In this document: in pieces, positions 730 to 8,778 of the stretch | Position numbering within the stretch: position 1 is the first letter of the stretch | How the letters are laid out: each line of letters begins with the position of its first letter | Assembly: GCA_038496445.1 (NCBI GenBank) | Contig: JALMLS010000015.1 | Location: forward strand, 248,001 to 312,000 | Reading direction: 5' to 3' | DNA: 64,000 nucleotides | Source: Trichosphaerium sp. ATCC 40318 | Taxonomy: Eukaryota > Protista > Tubulinea | Notes under the pieces: generated by a model | Seen by the model: only the letters and a program-made list of their open reading frames with translations | Told to the model about the DNA's origin: nothing | Databases searched by the model: none | Position numbers and translations under genes: made by a program

Positions 730-2927
730 ATGCCAAACAGAAACATTTTAATGTTTCTCCTTCTATCTACCTTCGCTTGTATTATGCTGAATGCTCAACC
801 CGAAGGTACGTTCCGAGCTTGTTAGACAAATAGTTTTCCAAACCGAAGAAACAGCTGCTTGCCCTGTAGCCATTCTTTGGCTAAGTGGCGTAGTAATTAC
901 TGGTTTTTGATTTAAAATCCGCTTTTTTGTGAGGTTCTACAGTTACTAAAGTTGTTGAGAACCAAACCATAGGTTTAGATACTATGCTAGGCGTTAGCAA
1001 TTTCTAGATTTAATTGTCCACGTGACCGAGTACTAAGAATTTTTATTTTCTAGAGCTGTATGCTATGGATATTGAAGCTGGCTCTGAATGCTTACTTGTC
1101 GTCGACGAAAGGCTACTAGTTTGCTCTAATCGATCATTAGTTGTTTACAACTGGTCAGGTAATTAGCTTATCTTGTAGCGCCTTGACCTAACGCCTGCGA
1201 ATATGTACAGGAGACATGTATACGCTAAGTGTTAGAAAAATCAATTGGGGGAACGATGCGGATGATACCTTTCGCGATTCCCATCCCCAAGGTACCATAG
1301 CGATGAAAGGAAGCTGTAAGATTAACATCAAATAAATAGGTATTGCCACAGGAAGATACTTGTCTGATATTTTTGTTACGACTGGTTTTACTGACGAGAG
1401 GCAGATAGTACGAGCTTGTTTTCTTACTATTGTGATAAGTTTTTTAGGCTGTTTTAGATAGCGAGCTAAGTTTGAGAAGAACTCTAAGTTTAGATTTAAA
1501 CTTGATCGATCCAGATTATAGACAGATAACTATTGATCCTTCTGATACTTATATACTCGTTTCTGTCTTTAAACCAATCGCTGGTATCTACCAGTATTTT
1601 ATTAATGGTGAGATAATAATTTTTCGCACACTGCTTACCATGATAGGCACTCACACTGGTACGTACAAAGCCAACTATGGTGAAGACTTCCCTCAGGTAC
1701 TGTTACACAATCAAATGCGCTCTACCAACAACATGCTCTAACATTGAATAGGGAGTAGGGTTTATATCAAATGATGTGCTAACAGTACCATCTACCAAAT
1801 TCCTGTTGTACTTTACAATTGGTACGTATGTGCTCCTTTGTTTTTTCTTGTAATGTGCACTGTTAAGGTGACTATGACCAGCCAACACATAACACAACAA
1901 ATCCCGATCCTTTCAAAGGTCAGGCTATACATGCATATCCTAGCAACGACTTCTTCATACTGGAGAGTGAAAACGGAGCATTTTTGCTTCATAGTAATGG
2001 CACAAATAATGTGTTGGTCAATGTATTAACCTTGTATCTAGGAAGTGTAGTAAACTATTCAATACCTTCCTCAAATTTTGCTGTCAAAGTGACCATAGAC
2101 AACCTTGGACGTATCTTCTTGGTAGACGAATCCGGTCTAAAGATTTTTCCAAAACCAAGCATAGTATCAACAGGTCCAATAGATCCAATCACATTAGCAC
2201 CAACAACAATAGGTACCGTGGCGCCAATGGGATTGCTTCCACTACCCCCCACACTTTCTGGTGCCATATCATTATAATCATCACTCTTGCTAATTTCTTT
2301 AGTTATTACTTGCACCTCAGGCGAATGTACAATAAACGGAGATTTCGTCATTGACACAGATACAAGTATTGTTGGCAATAGAAGTCTTACTGTCAATGGT
2401 GAGTAATCTAAGAAGTAAACTACCAATTGTGTTGTTTAGGTGACTTAGAATGGAAATCAGGAAGTGTTCTTACTCTTGATTACTTGACGAATGTTACAGT
2501 AAAAGGATGTTTAAACTTGACAAATGCTTCAATTGAACTTGTTCCTCCTTCTGACACAAATTCTTTGGCGCCCCGAGATCGTGTACTACTCTTCAGTGCA
2601 TCAGAGTGCGATATTGATACAAATGGATTGATGGTAGACTTTGGAATACTTGAGTGTGTAACCGCATCTCTTGATACATTAGGTACCCATTGAAGCGTTC
2701 TTATTTTTTACATTGCAGTTGTAGAGCTACGGAAGGTGTATGTATTGTTTGATGACACATGCCAAGGTAAAAGTAGTAACAACGCTGTCAAGTACTCCCT
2801 GATAGCTGTTGGTATTGTGGTGGGATTGATTGTAGTCGTACTTATTGTTGGCGTTATCTGGAAACCTCAGATATTCTTCCCATTTCACAACTATAGAAAA
2901 AAACGAAAAAGAAAACAAGCATGTTAA
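730..2927 (+). CDS. Multi-exon single-pass membrane protein: signal peptide, beta-propeller-like ectodomain, P/T-rich stalk, beta-rich domain, TM helix, basic tail
   Basis: ATG at 730 gives MPNRNILMFLLLSTFACIMLNAQP (signal peptide). The first exons join in frame through GT-AG introns. TM helix is YSLIAVGIVVGLIVVVLIVGVIW; stop at 2925-2927. Confidence 0.7.
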
Positions 2928-3039
2928 CCTTAACTCCAAAGCAGTTCTAAACAATAAATAAACCATAGTTCACCTATGACTTCTACCAGTTGCCCTTGTG
3001 GAAATTGATGACTAATTTTTTGGACGTACAGTTTCCACA

Positions 3040-3200
3040 AACTAATTTGATTTAGACAAACTCCACTCAGTAGCAACTAGCAATTGATACACTCAACCTG
3101 ATTAGAGACAATGAGTATTGATCCTTCCAATACATACTTGCTCGAGTTTGTGTCTTTGAATGCAGAGGGTATTCATTAGGACCAAATTAAAAACAGTAAG
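3040..3200 (+). pseudogene. Decayed fragment of a third paralogue of the 730-2927 gene
   Basis: Translates, with stops and a frameshift, as PD*RQ/SIDPSNTYLLEFVSLNAEGIH*, matching PDYRQITIDPSDTYILVSVFKPIAGIYQ at ~1510-1600. Confidence 0.55.
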
Positions 3201-3743
3201 CAATGATAAGCGCTGCTTTTAGAAGATTCTCGTCAGAGTATGTCAAGTACAACATAACCTCGAATAGAGCGTAGCTTTATTGTTCAAGTATTATTGTAGA
3301 TACAGGATGTCTGACTGCTAATAAGAACTTGGACACGCTGATTATCCGAGGCTGTGATAAGTTATAAAAATTGCAAGCTGCATCATTTGTCAAAGTACTG
3401 TCGTGAGTATTCTTCGGGTTGGTACTCTGGAGATGGTAAATGTTTGATTTGGCCTGGTATGAATAGAAGCATGATTTATGGCAGCCACTTGTGCCAACAA
3501 AGAATGCTTTGGTATGACCACATTGTCATAAGAACTCTTGTGTAGCCAGAGGCTACTGTGTTGCACATACAGTTAAGATTGTATTTTGTAATAAATAAAA
3601 CGTTATTTCAAAGAAACTGTAATTTATTCTTTCCGTCAGCTAGCGTTCCAAATGGATAGATTGCAAAATTGTATTTGAAGAAAAATTCGAATATTCTTCT
3701 CGCTTTTATGGTTGTATAATACGGCAAATACTGAGGCTAATGG

Positions 3744-3820
3744 TGTCGTATAAGGTTCCACCATACTCCAGAGTGAGTGTGTTAATACGTTTTGTATAGC
3801 GTAGTGGTTAGTACGCGACA
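3744..3820 (+). repeat. 5' LTR (77 bp)
   Basis: Exact copy of 3987-4063; TG...CA ends with a 5-bp terminal inverted repeat. Confidence 0.95.
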
Positions 3821-3851
3821 TATGGCGACACGATGCTGTGGGTTCGATCCC
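3797..3851 (+). promoter_or_regulatory. tRNA-type (type 2) RNA polymerase III internal promoter split across the LTR/internal junction
   Basis: A box TAGCGTAGTGG (3797-3807) lies in an intact D-arm (GCGT-AGTGGTTAGT-ACGC). B box is GGTTCGATCCC (3841-3851). The 44-nt offset equals tRNA positions 8 to 52. Confidence 0.75.
3823..3835 (+). other. Primer-binding site (complement of a tRNA 3' end, possibly tRNA-Ser)
   Basis: TGG-CGACACGATG directly after the LTR is the complement of ...CATCGTGTCG-CCA. A G discriminator and GAC..GTC acceptor end are typical of tRNA-Ser; the identity is not verified. Confidence 0.75.
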
Positions 3852-3973
3852 CGGATCGGCCCGATTTGAATTACACCTACGGGTGTGTGCACGATTGTAC
3901 TGTGCGGTAATACCTTCTCCCTGACTTAGCAAAGAGACCCCGGTACGGAACGGTCGAGGGCGACCTCTTGTTT

Positions 3974-3984
3974 AAGGAGGGGAG
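3974..3984 (+). other. Polypurine tract
   Basis: AAGGAGGGGAG immediately upstream of the 3' LTR. Confidence 0.85.
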
Positions 3985-3986
3985 TA

Positions 3987-4063
3987 TGTCGTATAAGGTT
4001 CCACCATACTCCAGAGTGAGTGTGTTAATACGTTTTGTATAGCGTAGTGGTTAGTACGCGACA
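3987..4063 (+). repeat. 3' LTR (77 bp)
   Basis: Exact copy of 3744-3820, followed by the ATGG TSD. Confidence 0.95.
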
Positions 4064-5549
4064 ATGGTGACAAAACGGCACAAATTACATTCTTATTACT
4101 TTCCTAAATCCATTTCTTAACATCTTCAAAAAGAAAGAAAGTTTATTTTTGCACCGGGTCACTGTAACCAAATTTACAGTTGGCTTGCCCTGGACCGAAA
4201 TACAACTATGGAGGACGTACACGAGGGGTTACACTTTGTTTACAAACATTTTGTGTACTTGAATTCTTCGAAATCATTTTGTGTGTTTCTTGAACGCTGT
4301 TTCAGTAGATAGTAACATAAGTAGGGTGAGCAGTGCCATGAGAGTCCATTGGCGTGAATTGCTGTTGAGGGTTTTTGTTATTCCTGCTCGTTGTCTGTGG
4401 AATCGTACGTAGCCTGAACAACCTTGCTATTATCTGGGCACCGCCCAAGTAGCGATGTTCCAAACGAATAGAATACCGAATCTATCACCAGAACGTAAAA
4501 AGTTATTATTATTCCGATTCGGTTTTCAGAGAAGAGCGACTGTGAAACTGAAAGTTGTTGGCTTTTTTTTTAATCACCAAGTGCTTTTTTTTCATCCAAA
4601 CTACTCTCATATGTTTTAAAATGCATAGTTCTATACATAGAGTGGTTGAAAGCCCTATATTGAGTGAGTTTAAGATATCTACATTTTAGCTGTAAAACTT
4701 TGTCGCGGTAGGCCTAACCGACACTTTTGTTGTGAAATTGTGCCAGTGGTGAGCCAATCTTGAGCCCACCACGTGATCTATTTTTTTGCTGTCTCAAAAC
4801 CACTTTTTAGTACTTCCCACGCGTAGAAATAGCCATCACTTGAGGTAAAACATATTTTAACAACATCTCCACCTTATAACATCTCTGCCGTTAACCAATC
4901 GTTACCGTGCCCAGGGTACACCAAACGAGGAGGTGTTACGTCGTACCCTTTACATCCTTACAACATATGGAGACTTTTTTTTAATCAGCAGAAAACCTAC
5001 GACAGTGTAGTGACTTACTCTACGGAGACGGCGACGCGAGGGACTAGACAGAACAAGTAAACGATGGCACCACGTAAGGAACACTTCATGCTAATTCTAT
5101 TGAACACTACAAAATTATGTTTGGTTAACTTTTGAAATTATACGGAACTTCGCTTAGCATTCCCTAAATTTTTTTTTTTGCGAAGTATACAGGGTATTAG
5201 AGGGTATGACAAAAGTAAATGTAACAGAACAGTTGTGATGCGTTTGTAAGTTGTAATTTATTAATATTTACAGGCTTAGTCGGGAAAGGTAACTGATAGA
5301 AATTCAAGGGAAATTTCGTATATTTATACTTGTCTTTGAATGTTCTTCTTGTGATTCAGTATGAGTTCTTTCCATACGAATTCTAATCGTTACAGTAATG
5401 TATTAATTTTTCGGTGTTCCTGAAAAAAATAGTGTTCTTAATGAAAAAAAAATTGTTACACAATTGCTTTGTTCATGCCTCACTAGGATGTTATATAAAC
5501 ACGTTGCCATAGTTACAAAGCATTTTGCCATAAACATTCTTCAGTTCAC

Positions 5550-5667
5550 TCTACCAAGTTCTGGTTAATACATATTATAGACACATATGTGTTCTGAAGT
5601 ATACTCAAAAATTGGACATAAATAACGAGGTGCCCCTAGAAAGTGTGAACTGCTTACAAAAATCGTC
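5550..5667 (+). repeat. Diverged, truncated copy of the right end of the 5738-7085 element
   Basis: 5550-5667 aligns with ~6955-7083, ending in 29 identical bases GAAAGTGTGAACTGCTTACAAAAATCGTC. Confidence 0.7.
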
Positions 5668-5737
5668 AGCGTTATAAATATGCTTTCAACAAAATATGAA
5701 CATTAATTTGTGAATTGTGTCGGAAAGGTGACACATA

Positions 5738-7085
5738 GGGACTATTTTTGTAAGCGGTTCACACCTCTTATATCAAAGCTTTAGCGTGTGTTAATGTATC
5801 TCTAGAACGAATGGCTCTATTGTTATGTTCTAAGTGTGAAATAAATTATTTACTTTTTTACATGTTTTTTGGCGTATTTTTTTAATACATAGCTAAAAAA
5901 GCTTCAATCGAGCTTCATTGAGAATAAGCAGATGATTCGAGCGTGGAATCATCATAAACCGCTCTTGCAAATAAATTGATGCGTTATGGGCTAAAATAAA
6001 GCTTATAGTACCACAATATGAACGTGTATGTACAATGTACCTTTAAACGGCGTTTATCGCTCAGAAAACGCTTAAAACGTTGGTTTGCTGTGTTAATATT
6101 CTAGTCAAATCGAGTTCCCCAATACCGATGTAGGGCAAGCGTGTACAAGCGTTTAAATGGTGTACATACATTTAATAGGTATTTGACATATGTTAAGAAG
6201 GGTTTCAAGTCTGTACAGCCTTGCGTAATCTGTAAATTCCAATATTCTGTCGTATGTTACCATAAGCAATTTTACGTTTTATGAAATACCATGAGTAATT
6301 GAAGGTCCCTTACTCTTTGAAAGTACAGTCCATGCACTGTATATGATACAGCATAACTTTCAGCAATAGTTAAACAATTGTAGCAGCATAGTTTCAAAGA
6401 AACTGTTTTTGGTAAGTACTGAAGTATCTCCATGTAAAAAGTAAGTTCTGTCTCTAAAACTTCTGTAGTGGTAAAACATAACTACAGCAAGCTTTATGGA
6501 CCTCTGATTCAATAAAGTACCAAGCAAGAGTGAGTATTTTGACATTTTCATTTCAATATTATGTTCATCAACTTCTATGAAAAAGTAACCTCCGTGTTTT
6601 GATACCTAAATTATCAAATACTCTATAACTGCATATAGGTAGACAATGGTTTATTAAGCACCTGCCGCCAAAAGGAAAGATTTGAAAAAGGTATCTGTGG
6701 GTTAGAATGATTGTTCAAAATAATGACCAATTTACAGCAATCAGGTATAGAGACAGGTGATGATAGCTTTATGTGGAACACTGAAAGTGATAACAAATGC
6801 AAGAAACGACAGAATGTAATCCTTAATCACTATGGTGTTCAAGAATTACCTGCAGAATATGGTGGTGTTGGAGGAGAAGAAAATGATCCCAGGCAGGAAA
6901 AAATCGGTTTTAGATTCAATGAAATAGTTGATTGAAGTACACTATTAATTACCAGCAAGTTCTAGTTCAACCAAATTGTAGACACAAATGTGCTCTGAGG
7001 CATACCCAAAAGTTGGCCAAAAATAACGTTTTTGAGGTGTGCTAGACTTTTTTTGAAAGTGTGAACTGCTTACAAAAATCGTCCC
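5738..7085. mobile_element. Putative decayed TIR DNA transposon (~1.35 kb)
   Basis: Imperfect ~27-bp inverted termini GGGACTATTTTTGTAAGCGGTTCACAC ... GTGTGAACTGCTTACAAAAATCGTCCC, flanked by TA on both sides. The interior has coding-like but stop-interrupted sequence (e.g. 6640-6935). No transposase motif recognised. Confidence 0.55.
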
Positions 7086-7104
7086 TAGGCTCCGGAGTGA
7101 CATC

Positions 7105-7293
7105 GACTTTGCCAGTGTGGCTACTACACCGATCAAAACTTATTTGTGTGATATGAGACATCTCCGACTTTGCCTATGTGTCACAACTTCATGAGATATC
7201 TCCGGTACTACCTGTCTCATATCATATGTGAATCGTAATATATACATAAGACTTTGCCAGTGTGGCTACTACACCCGATCAAAACTTATTTGT
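7105..7293 (+). repeat. 43/44-bp direct repeat pair with an internal inverted repeat
   Basis: GACTTTGCCAGTGTGGCTACTACACC(C)GATCAAAACTTATTTGT at 7105-7147 and 7250-7293. TGATATGAGACA/TGTCTCATATCA form an inverted pair between them. Confidence 0.85.
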
Positions 7294-7409
7294 AATGGCC
7301 AGGTATGGATATCGCTCGCAAATCGTACGTATCAGTACAGCTTAGTGTTTTAAGAATTCACGTTCTCAAGCAAAAGTGCGATAAACAATTTGCATACATA
7401 GACCCCAAC

Positions 7410-8567
7410 ATGCTACAGGACTATGAGTTTAAACCAAGCCAGAGTAAGATAGTTAAATTGGTTTTTTTACATCACCTGTAGACCTCACACCGCTCTTTCC
7501 TACTCTTAATTGTCCAGAAACAGTAGATGAAAACACGAACATACAGAAAAAGCGTCAGCGAAATGATTCAAGTCGCATACAAAAAAGCTCAAAGGTAAAA
7601 AAAAGAAGAAAGGATTCGAGAGGAAACCCGCTATCAGGTACGCTATCACGTGATTTGTACAATGGAGGTTACCTTTTTCGAACAGCTGTTCGAACTATTT
7701 TGTATTATCTACTTACCTCCAACACTTAGTATTGAGTCTTGTATCATACCTTCCCGAAATAGCTACAGTTCATACCAACAATGAACTAGGGAAAGCAAAA
7801 AAAAAGACACCTTTGGCTTCACCTAATATTTCACTGCCCGAAAACGCAAGCAGTACGTCAGATTTATTGATTTAATCAAATGCCCTATCTTAAAACAAAC
7901 CGTATCTTTCTTGCTGATACTGTTCCAGAAAAAATGTTTGAGCTCCTTGGCAAATCCAACAAAAGTACTTTGATTGTATTAGTGTTGGCAGTAGTACGTG
8001 TAAGTTTAATCAATATTATCAATTTTTTGTTTAGATTCTCGAACTTGGCGTAAGAAAAAAGTTAACCGAAGAGGAAGAGGTCTTTGAAGAGGTCTTTGAA
8101 GTGTTGTGCGAGAAAAAAAAAACAGACTTTTTCTCAATATTGCTATTTGTTGCAACCAACGATCTCTACTTACGCTTATTTGCTTAGCAATCCCGATTTA
8201 TTCCTTCACAGCTTGATGATACTTAAACCGTATAAAAAGTGCACAGCCAGTGGGAAGCAGAGCGCGCTTAAAGCTATAAAGTAGTACGCCATTTGCTTTT
8301 TTTTTAACCACGAAGCAACATACTTATTTCATCTCCAGTTGGGTAGAAATCACCAAAGATAATGCATCCAGCCCTTGCTGGACCTTTAAAGTAACGGACC
8401 AAGCTCTTTGGATGTCCATGTGTGCGTCTGTACAAAACACGCTGGAAAACGGGAGCAGTGTGGAATGCTCGTTCTACGAACACGAACCTTCCAGGAGCCT
8501 ACGTTTAGACACTGTTGAGTTTATTGAATCCTTGACAGAATATAGTAAGATCGTTCATGGACTCTGA
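7410..8567 (+). CDS. Hypothetical protein with basic NLS-like segment
   Basis: Continuous spliced frame MLQDYEFKPSQN...KKRQR...KVKKRRK...EFIESLTEYSKIVHGL* through canonical GT-AG introns. Confidence 0.6.
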
Positions 8568-8778
8568 AAGACACAATGTGTTAATTCATACATGAAACTA
8601 CCAGCTTAGAATAAATTGTTTACATAGATTATCAAGTACAACATTTATTTTAATTTAGCAAACGATTCCTTGTGGTTAGTTTACCATAAATTTTCTTGTG
8701 TTTTGCAAACGGTTAAAAATGCTCGATACGTTCACAGAACTACAGATTTTCAATAACATCATTAAACAAACTTTCCTA

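Follow-up and report, generated by a model that had tools for sequence, protein, structure and literature searches.

Is a 320-bp stretch of the genome of Trichosphaerium sp. ATCC 40318, with the ends of a retrotransposon and two motifs of a tRNA gene, a mobile element in its own right, and could it be transcribed from a promoter that is complete only where its LTR meets the internal region? The stretch lies at positions 3744-4063 of the window, i.e., the whole sequence of 64,000 nucleotides that was analyzed (contig C9:248001-312000), and all its features are given for the + strand. Its two 77-bp LTRs (TGTCG...CGACA), at 3744..3820 and 3987..4063, are 100% identical, and direct reading of the flanks gives the TSD ATGG on the left (3740..3743) and on the right (4064..4067). 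The internal region of 166 bp (3821..3986, 55% G+C) starts with a TA spacer (3821-3822) and the PBS TGGCGACACGA (3823..3833), and ends with the PPT AAGGAGGGGAG (3974-3984) followed by another TA spacer up to 3986. It is non-coding, and no ORF of note overlapping 3744-4063 was found. The initial annotation had claimed these same features (identical 77-bp TG..CA LTRs, an ATGG TSD, PBS and PPT in canonical positions, and no coding capacity), and all of them were confirmed. We conclude that 3744-4063 is a true miniature LTR retroelement of the non-autonomous kind (TRIM), and that it has been active recently.

The assembly that we searched comprises 70.3 Mb in 642 contigs, with about 37% G+C. Two copies of the full 320-bp element were found genome-wide (70 Mb). 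The second one (C29:309062-309381, minus strand) has its own TSD, GTAA, and shows two differences in 320 nt from the window copy, C/T at 3874 and T/C at 3944. The 166-bp internal region is present only in these two full copies, and the LTR alone gave 43 candidate places. Inspection of 35 single LTR copies puts the family at no fewer than, i.e., at least, 35 members beyond the full copies. Eight of the 35 are identical to the LTR of the window, 17 have perfect 4-bp TSDs, all differing, and three LTR subfamilies can be told apart by their identity to the window LTR (about 95-100%, about 88-91% and about 78-81%). Dispersed copies, TSDs and identical LTRs together indicate a real, recently active family that persists mainly as solo LTRs. 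The very recent transposition that had been claimed is upheld, since the two LTRs of the element are identical and eight solo LTRs are identical to them as well. The assignment to the TRIMs also stands, given the dispersed non-coding copies with different 4-bp TSDs, the PBS and the PPT. As to the many copies that the genome search had been expected to return, the differing 4-bp TSDs are there (ATGG, GTAA and those of 17 solo LTRs), and the full-length copies are only two. No tRNA gene was found within 1.5 kb of the 37 LTR loci checked, so insertion is not targeted to tRNA genes. In JGI metagenome contigs, a 28-mer covering the PBS and the T-arm described below had no match, and a 19-mer had two matches in GC-rich contigs, which we judged to be due to chance.

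The PBS is the exact complement, over 11 nt, of the 3'-terminal 8 nt of the tRNA-Ser(AGA/UGA/CGA) genes together with CCA. The annotated PBS thus pairs with a real tRNA, tRNA-Ser, over these 11 nt only; a longer PBS was rejected, since no tRNA gene fits the 15 nt after TGG at ≤2 mismatches. The same 11-mer is found downstream of LTR ends in many other elements, and in 14 of them an integrase match follows 3.5-7 kb downstream. Most tRNA-Ser-primed families have an GATTTGAACC-like motif after the PBS, complementary to the T-loop of tRNA-Ser, and in the autonomous families this second primer contact comes 3-4 nt beyond the PBS core. The corresponding complement of the tRNA-Ser T-loop in the miniature element, GATTTGAA (3863..3870), may serve as an extended primer contact; it is located 29 nt beyond the PBS core, with a sense T-arm in between.

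Among the tRNA-Ser-primed elements examined, a single one, at C44:226987-233975, has LTRs ending in CGACA. These LTRs are 150 bp long and start with TGTCG, the TSD is TAAA, and a TAT spacer leads to a PBS identical to that of the miniature element. At the other end, the PPT GAGGGGGA is followed by TA. The ORFs code for gag, protease, RT, RNase H and integrase, in the order of Ty3/gypsy elements, with the coding region spread over two reading frames (the pol region is split). The family is small, one full copy and one solo LTR. The PPT junction motif GAGGGGNNTATGTCG occurs at exactly three sites in the genome, the two miniature copies and the 3' junction of the C44 element. A Ty3/gypsy element of the kind that had been suggested as a search target, with the TGTCG..CGACA ends, PBS and PPT junction in common, does exist in this genome. 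Outside its termini, PBS and PPT junction, alignments of its LTR and internal region with those of the miniature element were not significant, and because the likeness is confined to these parts, we consider the C44-type element only a candidate helper, whose proteins would copy and insert the miniature element.

Three other loci were considered. The 28-mer of PBS and T-arm has one further exact site, on C117, behind a different 192-bp LTR (TGTCGTAT...CATAACA) in which AATAAA is present and the A box absent; a T-arm behind an LTR of this kind implies that the T-arm needs no adjacent A box. As a partner, C117 was rejected, with no second LTR within 12 kb. From this, and from a copy of a C155 stretch that follows the 28-mer, the C117 element appears to be a truncated remnant, and its LTR and internal homology to the miniature element were not significant beyond the ends, PBS and PPT. 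On C563, two LTR-like copies 6.8 kb apart were also rejected as an autonomous partner. They are inside duplications of ~800 bp that flank a repeat-rich host region, where a gag-pol ORF is absent. A one-mismatch PPT junction on C32 was taken as a chance match, since no LTR follows it.

The motifs of a tRNA gene are found on both sides of the LTR/PBS junction. The A box TAGCGTAGTGG (3797..3807) matches every specified position of TRGCNNAGTGG, and a D-arm-like hairpin can be drawn around it (3799-3816). The B box GGTTCGATCCC (3841-3851) lies 44 nt downstream of the start of the A box, enclosed by a T-arm-like hairpin (3838..3854). An A box at the end of the LTR with a B box 44 nt further on had been proposed before, and both are in place. 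The strict pattern TRGCNNAGTGG-N25-45-GGTTCGANNCC gave seven matches in 70 Mb, namely, the two copies of the element and five tRNA-Thr(UGU/CGU) genes, and the reversed pattern used as a control gave none. The A/B module is, hence, far beyond chance. From A-box start to B-box end there are 55 nt in the element and in tRNA-Thr alike. Compared with tRNA-Thr(UGU), the arms that bear the promoter are similar (D-arm, 16/20 identical positions; T-arm, 13/19), and the others much less so (acceptor, 2/7 and 4/7; anticodon arm, 6/20). Judging from these identities, the D-arm and the T-arm of a tRNA-Thr-like sequence appear to have been retained, with the end of the LTR and the PBS in the place of the anticodon arm. 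By this replacement, both boxes come together only where the 5' LTR joins the internal region.

The composite itself was rejected as a tRNA gene. ARAGORN called 0 genes in it, the Rfam tRNA model had no match at E up to 10, and the acceptor and anticodon arms are near-random. Of the tRNA origin that had been suggested, the derivation is retained, with tRNA-Thr as the nearest source, and the composite is no tRNA. Of the 35 LTR copies, 32 have an intact A box, with all three subfamilies represented. By our estimate, the A box varies between subfamilies no less than the remaining LTR does, and since the rest is about equally conserved, this is a weak sign of selection. The conservation of the boxes among copies can thus be affirmed for the A box, the internal region being present in only two copies plus one remnant. 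The two hairpins have energies of -6.3 and -6.9 kcal/mol, not better than those of shuffled sequences, and no exceptional RNA structure was found (z-scores, -0.3 to -1.8).

Signals for the formation of RNA ends set the element apart from its relatives. Neither AATAAA nor ATTAAA is found anywhere in it; in each of the 22 LTRs of other tRNA-Ser-primed elements examined, a single AATAAA lies 44-74 nt ahead of the PBS. Runs of four T's occur, on either strand, only at 3790..3793 in the 5' LTR, four bases before the A box, and at 4033-4036 in the 3' LTR, and the tRNA-Thr and tRNA-Ser genes here are likewise followed by TTTT as their first T run. The lack of AATAAA and ATTAAA and the placement of the T runs fit an RNA that is not mRNA-like. 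A TATAAG at LTR positions 6-11 (3749..3754) might act as a TATA element.

Transcript evidence came from the assembled contigs of public RNA runs (X1 to X4), in which the depth given per contig does not show local coverage. The runs derive from relatives of the assembled strain, the stretch 4152-4442 differing by 11 letters and 15 inserted letters, and the element in the RNA contigs has 0-3 differences from the window copy. The word depth in X1 is 1300-5700 for the element versus 22 at a neighboring transcribed stretch and 0 at 3300-3709. The element, as represented in contigs of these related strains, yields abundant sense RNA. In X1 and X3, which belong to separate studies, an Illumina adapter is fused at 3797 in one contig each; the last T of the adapter may itself be 3797, so that the insert, and with it the main sense RNA, begins at 3797 or 3798, i.e., 44-49 nt past the TATAAG. 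In record 20 of X3, the opposite adapter type follows 4004 (LTR position 18), and both adapters fit a stranded library of sense RNA. The X3 contigs leave positions 1-53 uncovered in the 5' LTR and positions 19-53 in the 3' LTR. Taken together, the coverage and ends in X3 give a main species that looks linear and about 207 nt long (3798-4004). No poly(A) tail was seen at its 3' end in the contig that abuts the adapter. A unit-length transcript with its end at the T run, as would be predicted, was not seen, the RNA end in this one run being 4004.

Other contigs extend further. X4, from the same sample as X3, has a low-depth contig running through the entire 3' LTR and 7 nt beyond. Record 1 of X1 goes from 3881 to 3986, then through a full LTR and on to 3851, and record 9 of X2 has 273 nt, i.e., 243 + 30. 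In both X1 and X2, the k=31 graph closes as a 243-nt cycle without branches to flanks, an appearance that is the same for a circle, for tandem copies and for read-through. The RNA contigs lead from the LTR into the PBS unbranched, although identical solo LTRs exist, and the lack of LTR-to-flank paths in spite of eight such solo LTRs suggests that accumulation of the RNA needs the internal part. Sequences at the loose ends of the RNA contigs, sought as an empty-site allele, had no match in the 64-kb window. When 3798-4004 is folded, pairing is predicted between the inverted ends of the LTRs (CGACAUA with UAUGUCG) and between GUGG (3804-3807) and CCAC (4001-4004), with the RNA ends at the base of the panhandle; the z-score of this fold is only -1.2. 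A helix-bulge-helix at the RNA ends (CCAC/GUGG plus AUAC/GUAU) was rejected, the second helix being absent in LTR subfamily B.

We regard a functional split Pol III promoter, with A and B boxes across the LTR/PBS junction, as plausible, giving it about an even chance of being correct. In the mechanism that we propose, the element carries a tRNA-Thr-like D-arm (A box) and T-arm (B box) with the end of the LTR and the PBS between them, and this pair would most likely recruit TFIIIC and Pol III. Pol III would then drive a short, non-mRNA-like transcript, making the element a split-promoter variant of the TRIMp3 class. Transcription would have to start unusually near, or even within, the A box, because the T run just upstream would abort earlier starts. 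The replication-competent RNA would read through the T run of the 3' LTR and thereby gain a terminal repeat, at most 23 nt long (LTR positions 55-77); the X4 contig is compatible with an RNA of this kind. A Pol III-like mode seems favored by boxes that are perfect and correctly spaced while the remaining tRNA has decayed, as well as by the apparent loss of AATAAA with T runs only in the LTRs. More indirectly, the tail-less 3' end, the high abundance and the unbranched LTR-PBS contigs point the same way. Several observations count against it. Starts of tRNA-type Pol III genes are located 8-20 nt before the A box. An RNA that begins at 3797/3798, equivalent to tRNA position 8/9, begins within the A box and departs from this canonical pattern; from a canonical start, in turn, the T run would be met at once. 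An RNA from 3798 to the T run at 4033-4036 has no terminal repeat, which also speaks against Pol III, as does the X3 end at 4004 rather than at a T run. The T-arm of C117 without an A box would count on the same side, and so do the unexceptional hairpins and an A box that is no better kept than the remaining LTR.

Alternatively, the element would be an ordinary TRIM with a promoter in U3 (Pol II or another upstream mode), and the tRNA-like arms would act in the RNA, a reading that we take to be possible, if on the unlikely side. The promoter would then consist of the TATAAG and the oligo-T run, with a start at LTR position 54/55. The RNA does begin a single base ahead of the D-arm hairpin, 44-49 nt past the TATAAG and directly past the T run, at a pyrimidine-purine step. 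AATAAA is absent, though, where 22/22 related LTRs have one, the RNA 3' end shows no visible poly(A) tail, and a promoter within the LTR should be active in eight identical solo LTRs, yet competing LTR-to-flank branches are not found among the contigs. As for the arms, with similarly limited probability, an elbow mimic flanking the PBS could place the tRNA-Ser primer, bind tRNA-binding proteins or stabilize the RNA. Both hairpins are within the RNA, on either side of the PBS, the T-arm of C117 also follows a PBS, behind an LTR with a poly(A) signal, and a tRNA-like element near the HIV-1 PBS provides a precedent. In addition, the autonomous families keep a second, GATTTGAA-like contact beyond the PBS, so primer-tRNA contacts outside it matter in this group. 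Against a mimic of this type, it would not require exact DNA-consensus boxes and spacing, and the fold has no support from covariation or energy. It is less probable still, in fact quite doubtful, that the module is a fossil, a captured tRNA-Thr gene or a fragment of a tRNA-derived SINE with no present role, other signals serving for expression and mobility. The negative results of ARAGORN and Rfam, the lost acceptor and anticodon arms and an A-box conservation that is not clearly above that of the remaining LTR speak for a fossil. The presence of the internal region in just two copies and one remnant is also compatible with it and makes selection on the B box not measurable. Against it, the boxes match the consensus fully at the exact tRNA spacing when the other arms have fallen to near-random identity, and the family is young and expressed.

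The missing repeat in an RNA beginning at LTR position 55 would no longer be a problem in a retrozyme-like replicon. In it, a unit of 243 nt, made up of one LTR and the internal region, would form a circular RNA or a one-LTR DNA circle, and reverse transcription round the circle would rebuild both LTRs without a terminal repeat in the RNA. Record 9 of X2 is precisely the k=31 output expected for a closed 243-nt cycle, and record 1 of X1 joins the internal end, a full LTR and the PBS at high depth, with no flank branches. The same graph cycle is also produced by tandem copies in the strains or by transcripts started upstream, and the ends at 3797/3798 and 4004 indicate instead a linear species of 207 nt. 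Besides, there is no CUGANGA hammerhead core on either strand and no Rfam ribozyme at E up to 10, and the helix-bulge considered for the cut sites does not hold up in LTR subfamily B. We hold a retrozyme-like replicon on its own to be very unlikely. The split Pol III promoter could be combined with it. A working split promoter together with a 243-nt circular or concatemeric intermediate would avoid the need for a terminal repeat, and the ~207-nt RNA would be a processed by-product; we see this as improbable, and the same small chance applies to what the combination would amount to, a ribozyme-free, retrozyme-like TRIM.

If the split pair works, the element has a context-dependent promoter within a mobile element. 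Half of the promoter would be copied to both ends and only the upstream copy completed by the internal half, so that a solo LTR or a 3' LTR would be silent from the outset. Pol III-type LTR parasites (TRIMp3) would then also be represented in Amoebozoa, with an LTR that is among the shortest recorded. In any case, an expressed element of 320 bp with two near-identical copies is a compact test case for the origin of the terminal repeat used in strand transfer, and even without Pol III, a tRNA-elbow mimic around the PBS would be a simple model of how a primer tRNA is placed.

Several described kinds of elements share part of these features. Like the tRNA-derived SINEs (SINE2), this one is a non-autonomous parasite that has kept only the A and B boxes of a tRNA and gives a short, abundant RNA. 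SINEs, in contrast, have no LTRs, PBS or PPT, depend on LINE machinery and produce variable TSDs; the LTRs, PBS, PPT and fixed 4-bp TSD found here rule out that identity. Classical TRIMs and SMARTs (SMARTs, 292 bp) are alike in size, PBS, PPT, TSDs, lack of coding sequence and dependence on autonomous elements, but they are without motifs of small-RNA genes and are taken to be transcribed by Pol II. Plant retrozymes are non-coding LTR elements with PBS, PPT, 4-bp TSDs and an abundant small RNA (Cervera et al. 2016, PMC4918200). The element has the same frame, the abundant small RNA and a contig graph that closes at unit length, and differs from them in that neither a hammerhead nor any other known ribozyme was found in it. 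Cassandra is likewise a TRIM with sequence derived from a Pol III gene. In the passages on it in PMC10886601, its LTR promoter comes from 5S rRNA, and its RNA is said to begin in the 5S part of the 5' LTR and to finish in that of the 3' LTR, with a terminal repeat of only 18 bp. As far as those passages describe it, Cassandra is a plant element with a 5S-type (type 1) promoter and a terminator wholly within the LTR, whereas the promoter motifs here are of tRNA type and split.

Helenus (TRIMp3) is closer. These non-coding TRIMs of 311-1263 bp occur in fungi, in animals and in one plant. They have a PBS, a PPT, TSDs of 4 or 5 bp and numerous solo LTRs, and the animal ones have been linked to Gypsy-type helpers (Kojima 2024, PMC10886601). 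Their LTR encloses a complete tRNA-like unit, boxes A and B included, which is no functional tRNA, and their use of Pol III is presumed, not validated (PMC10886601). The short non-coding element studied here resembles them in its PBS, PPT, 4-bp TSD, solo LTRs and tRNA-derived A and B boxes. It differs in that the A box is in the LTR (3797-3807) and the B box internal, beyond the PBS (3841-3851), in an LTR of only 77 bp, in its amoeba-type protist host and in the 5' end of its transcript inside the A box. Since the boxes are not both inside the LTR, the element is not a member of Helenus but rather a variant of the TRIMp3 idea. We found no description of the split A/B layout in the literature searched, including that on TRIMs in Amoebozoa and on TRIMp3. 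By its sequence features, then, Helenus/TRIMp3 appears to be the closest described kind, and the split module is what sets this element apart from it.

Only one other element in the genome, the Ty3/gypsy candidate helper on contig C44, combines the TGTCG..CGACA ends with the polypurine tract junction of the mini element. Its coding part is split (2301-6170 and 6236-8584 within L110, C44:225200-235199), with gag-PR-RT and RH-IN in separate reading frames, and the identity between its LTRs is 98-100%. The PBS, in turn, is shared more widely. A survey of 29 loci (L081-L109), centred on exact TGGCGACACGA matches, indicated that the tRNA-Ser PBS is common to several Ty3/gypsy-like families of this genome; in most of them it is followed by a GATTTGAACC-like motif, the complement of the primer T-loop, and each family has one AATAAA, located 44-74 nt upstream of the PBS. 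A truncated LTR element on the minus strand of C117 (about C117:4820-5045, in L043, C117:3333-6347) has a 192-bp LTR (TGTCGTAT...CATAACA) containing AATAAA, followed by TC and then by a 28-mer (PBS plus T-arm) identical to that of the mini element. Downstream of the 28-mer there is a copy of a stretch from C155, and no second LTR was found within 12 kb. The plus strand of L078 (C179:52540-52790) and of three similar loci (on C1, C160 and C535) resembles a tRNA 3' end with encoded CCA, a reading that we rejected, as the sequence is the extended PBS of one Ty3/gypsy family in reverse orientation.

Some LTR copies of the mini element appear to have been multiplied within other sequences. Four copies of ca. 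90% identity (L024, L025, L028 and L030) have both flanks in common, so they are evidently a single old solo LTR recopied as part of another repeat. On C563 (L033, C563:4700-13600), two segments of ~800 bp (317-1114 and 7153-7890 within the locus) share 94% identity at a distance of 6.8 kb, and a solo LTR of subfamily B, i.e., one of the three mini-LTR subfamilies, lies within each of them. These segments surround an array of ~147-nt tandem repeats, and the arrangement resembles a segmental duplication rather than a retroelement.

Positions 4152-4442 of the window are transcribed in the public RNA runs X1 and X2, with 11 substituted letters relative to the assembly and three insertions, of 1, 3 and 11 nt. 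The mini element in these runs, unlike this stretch, is nearly identical to the assembly. The differences across 4152-4442 indicate that the public RNA runs derive from a sister species or from a strain that has diverged from the assembled one.
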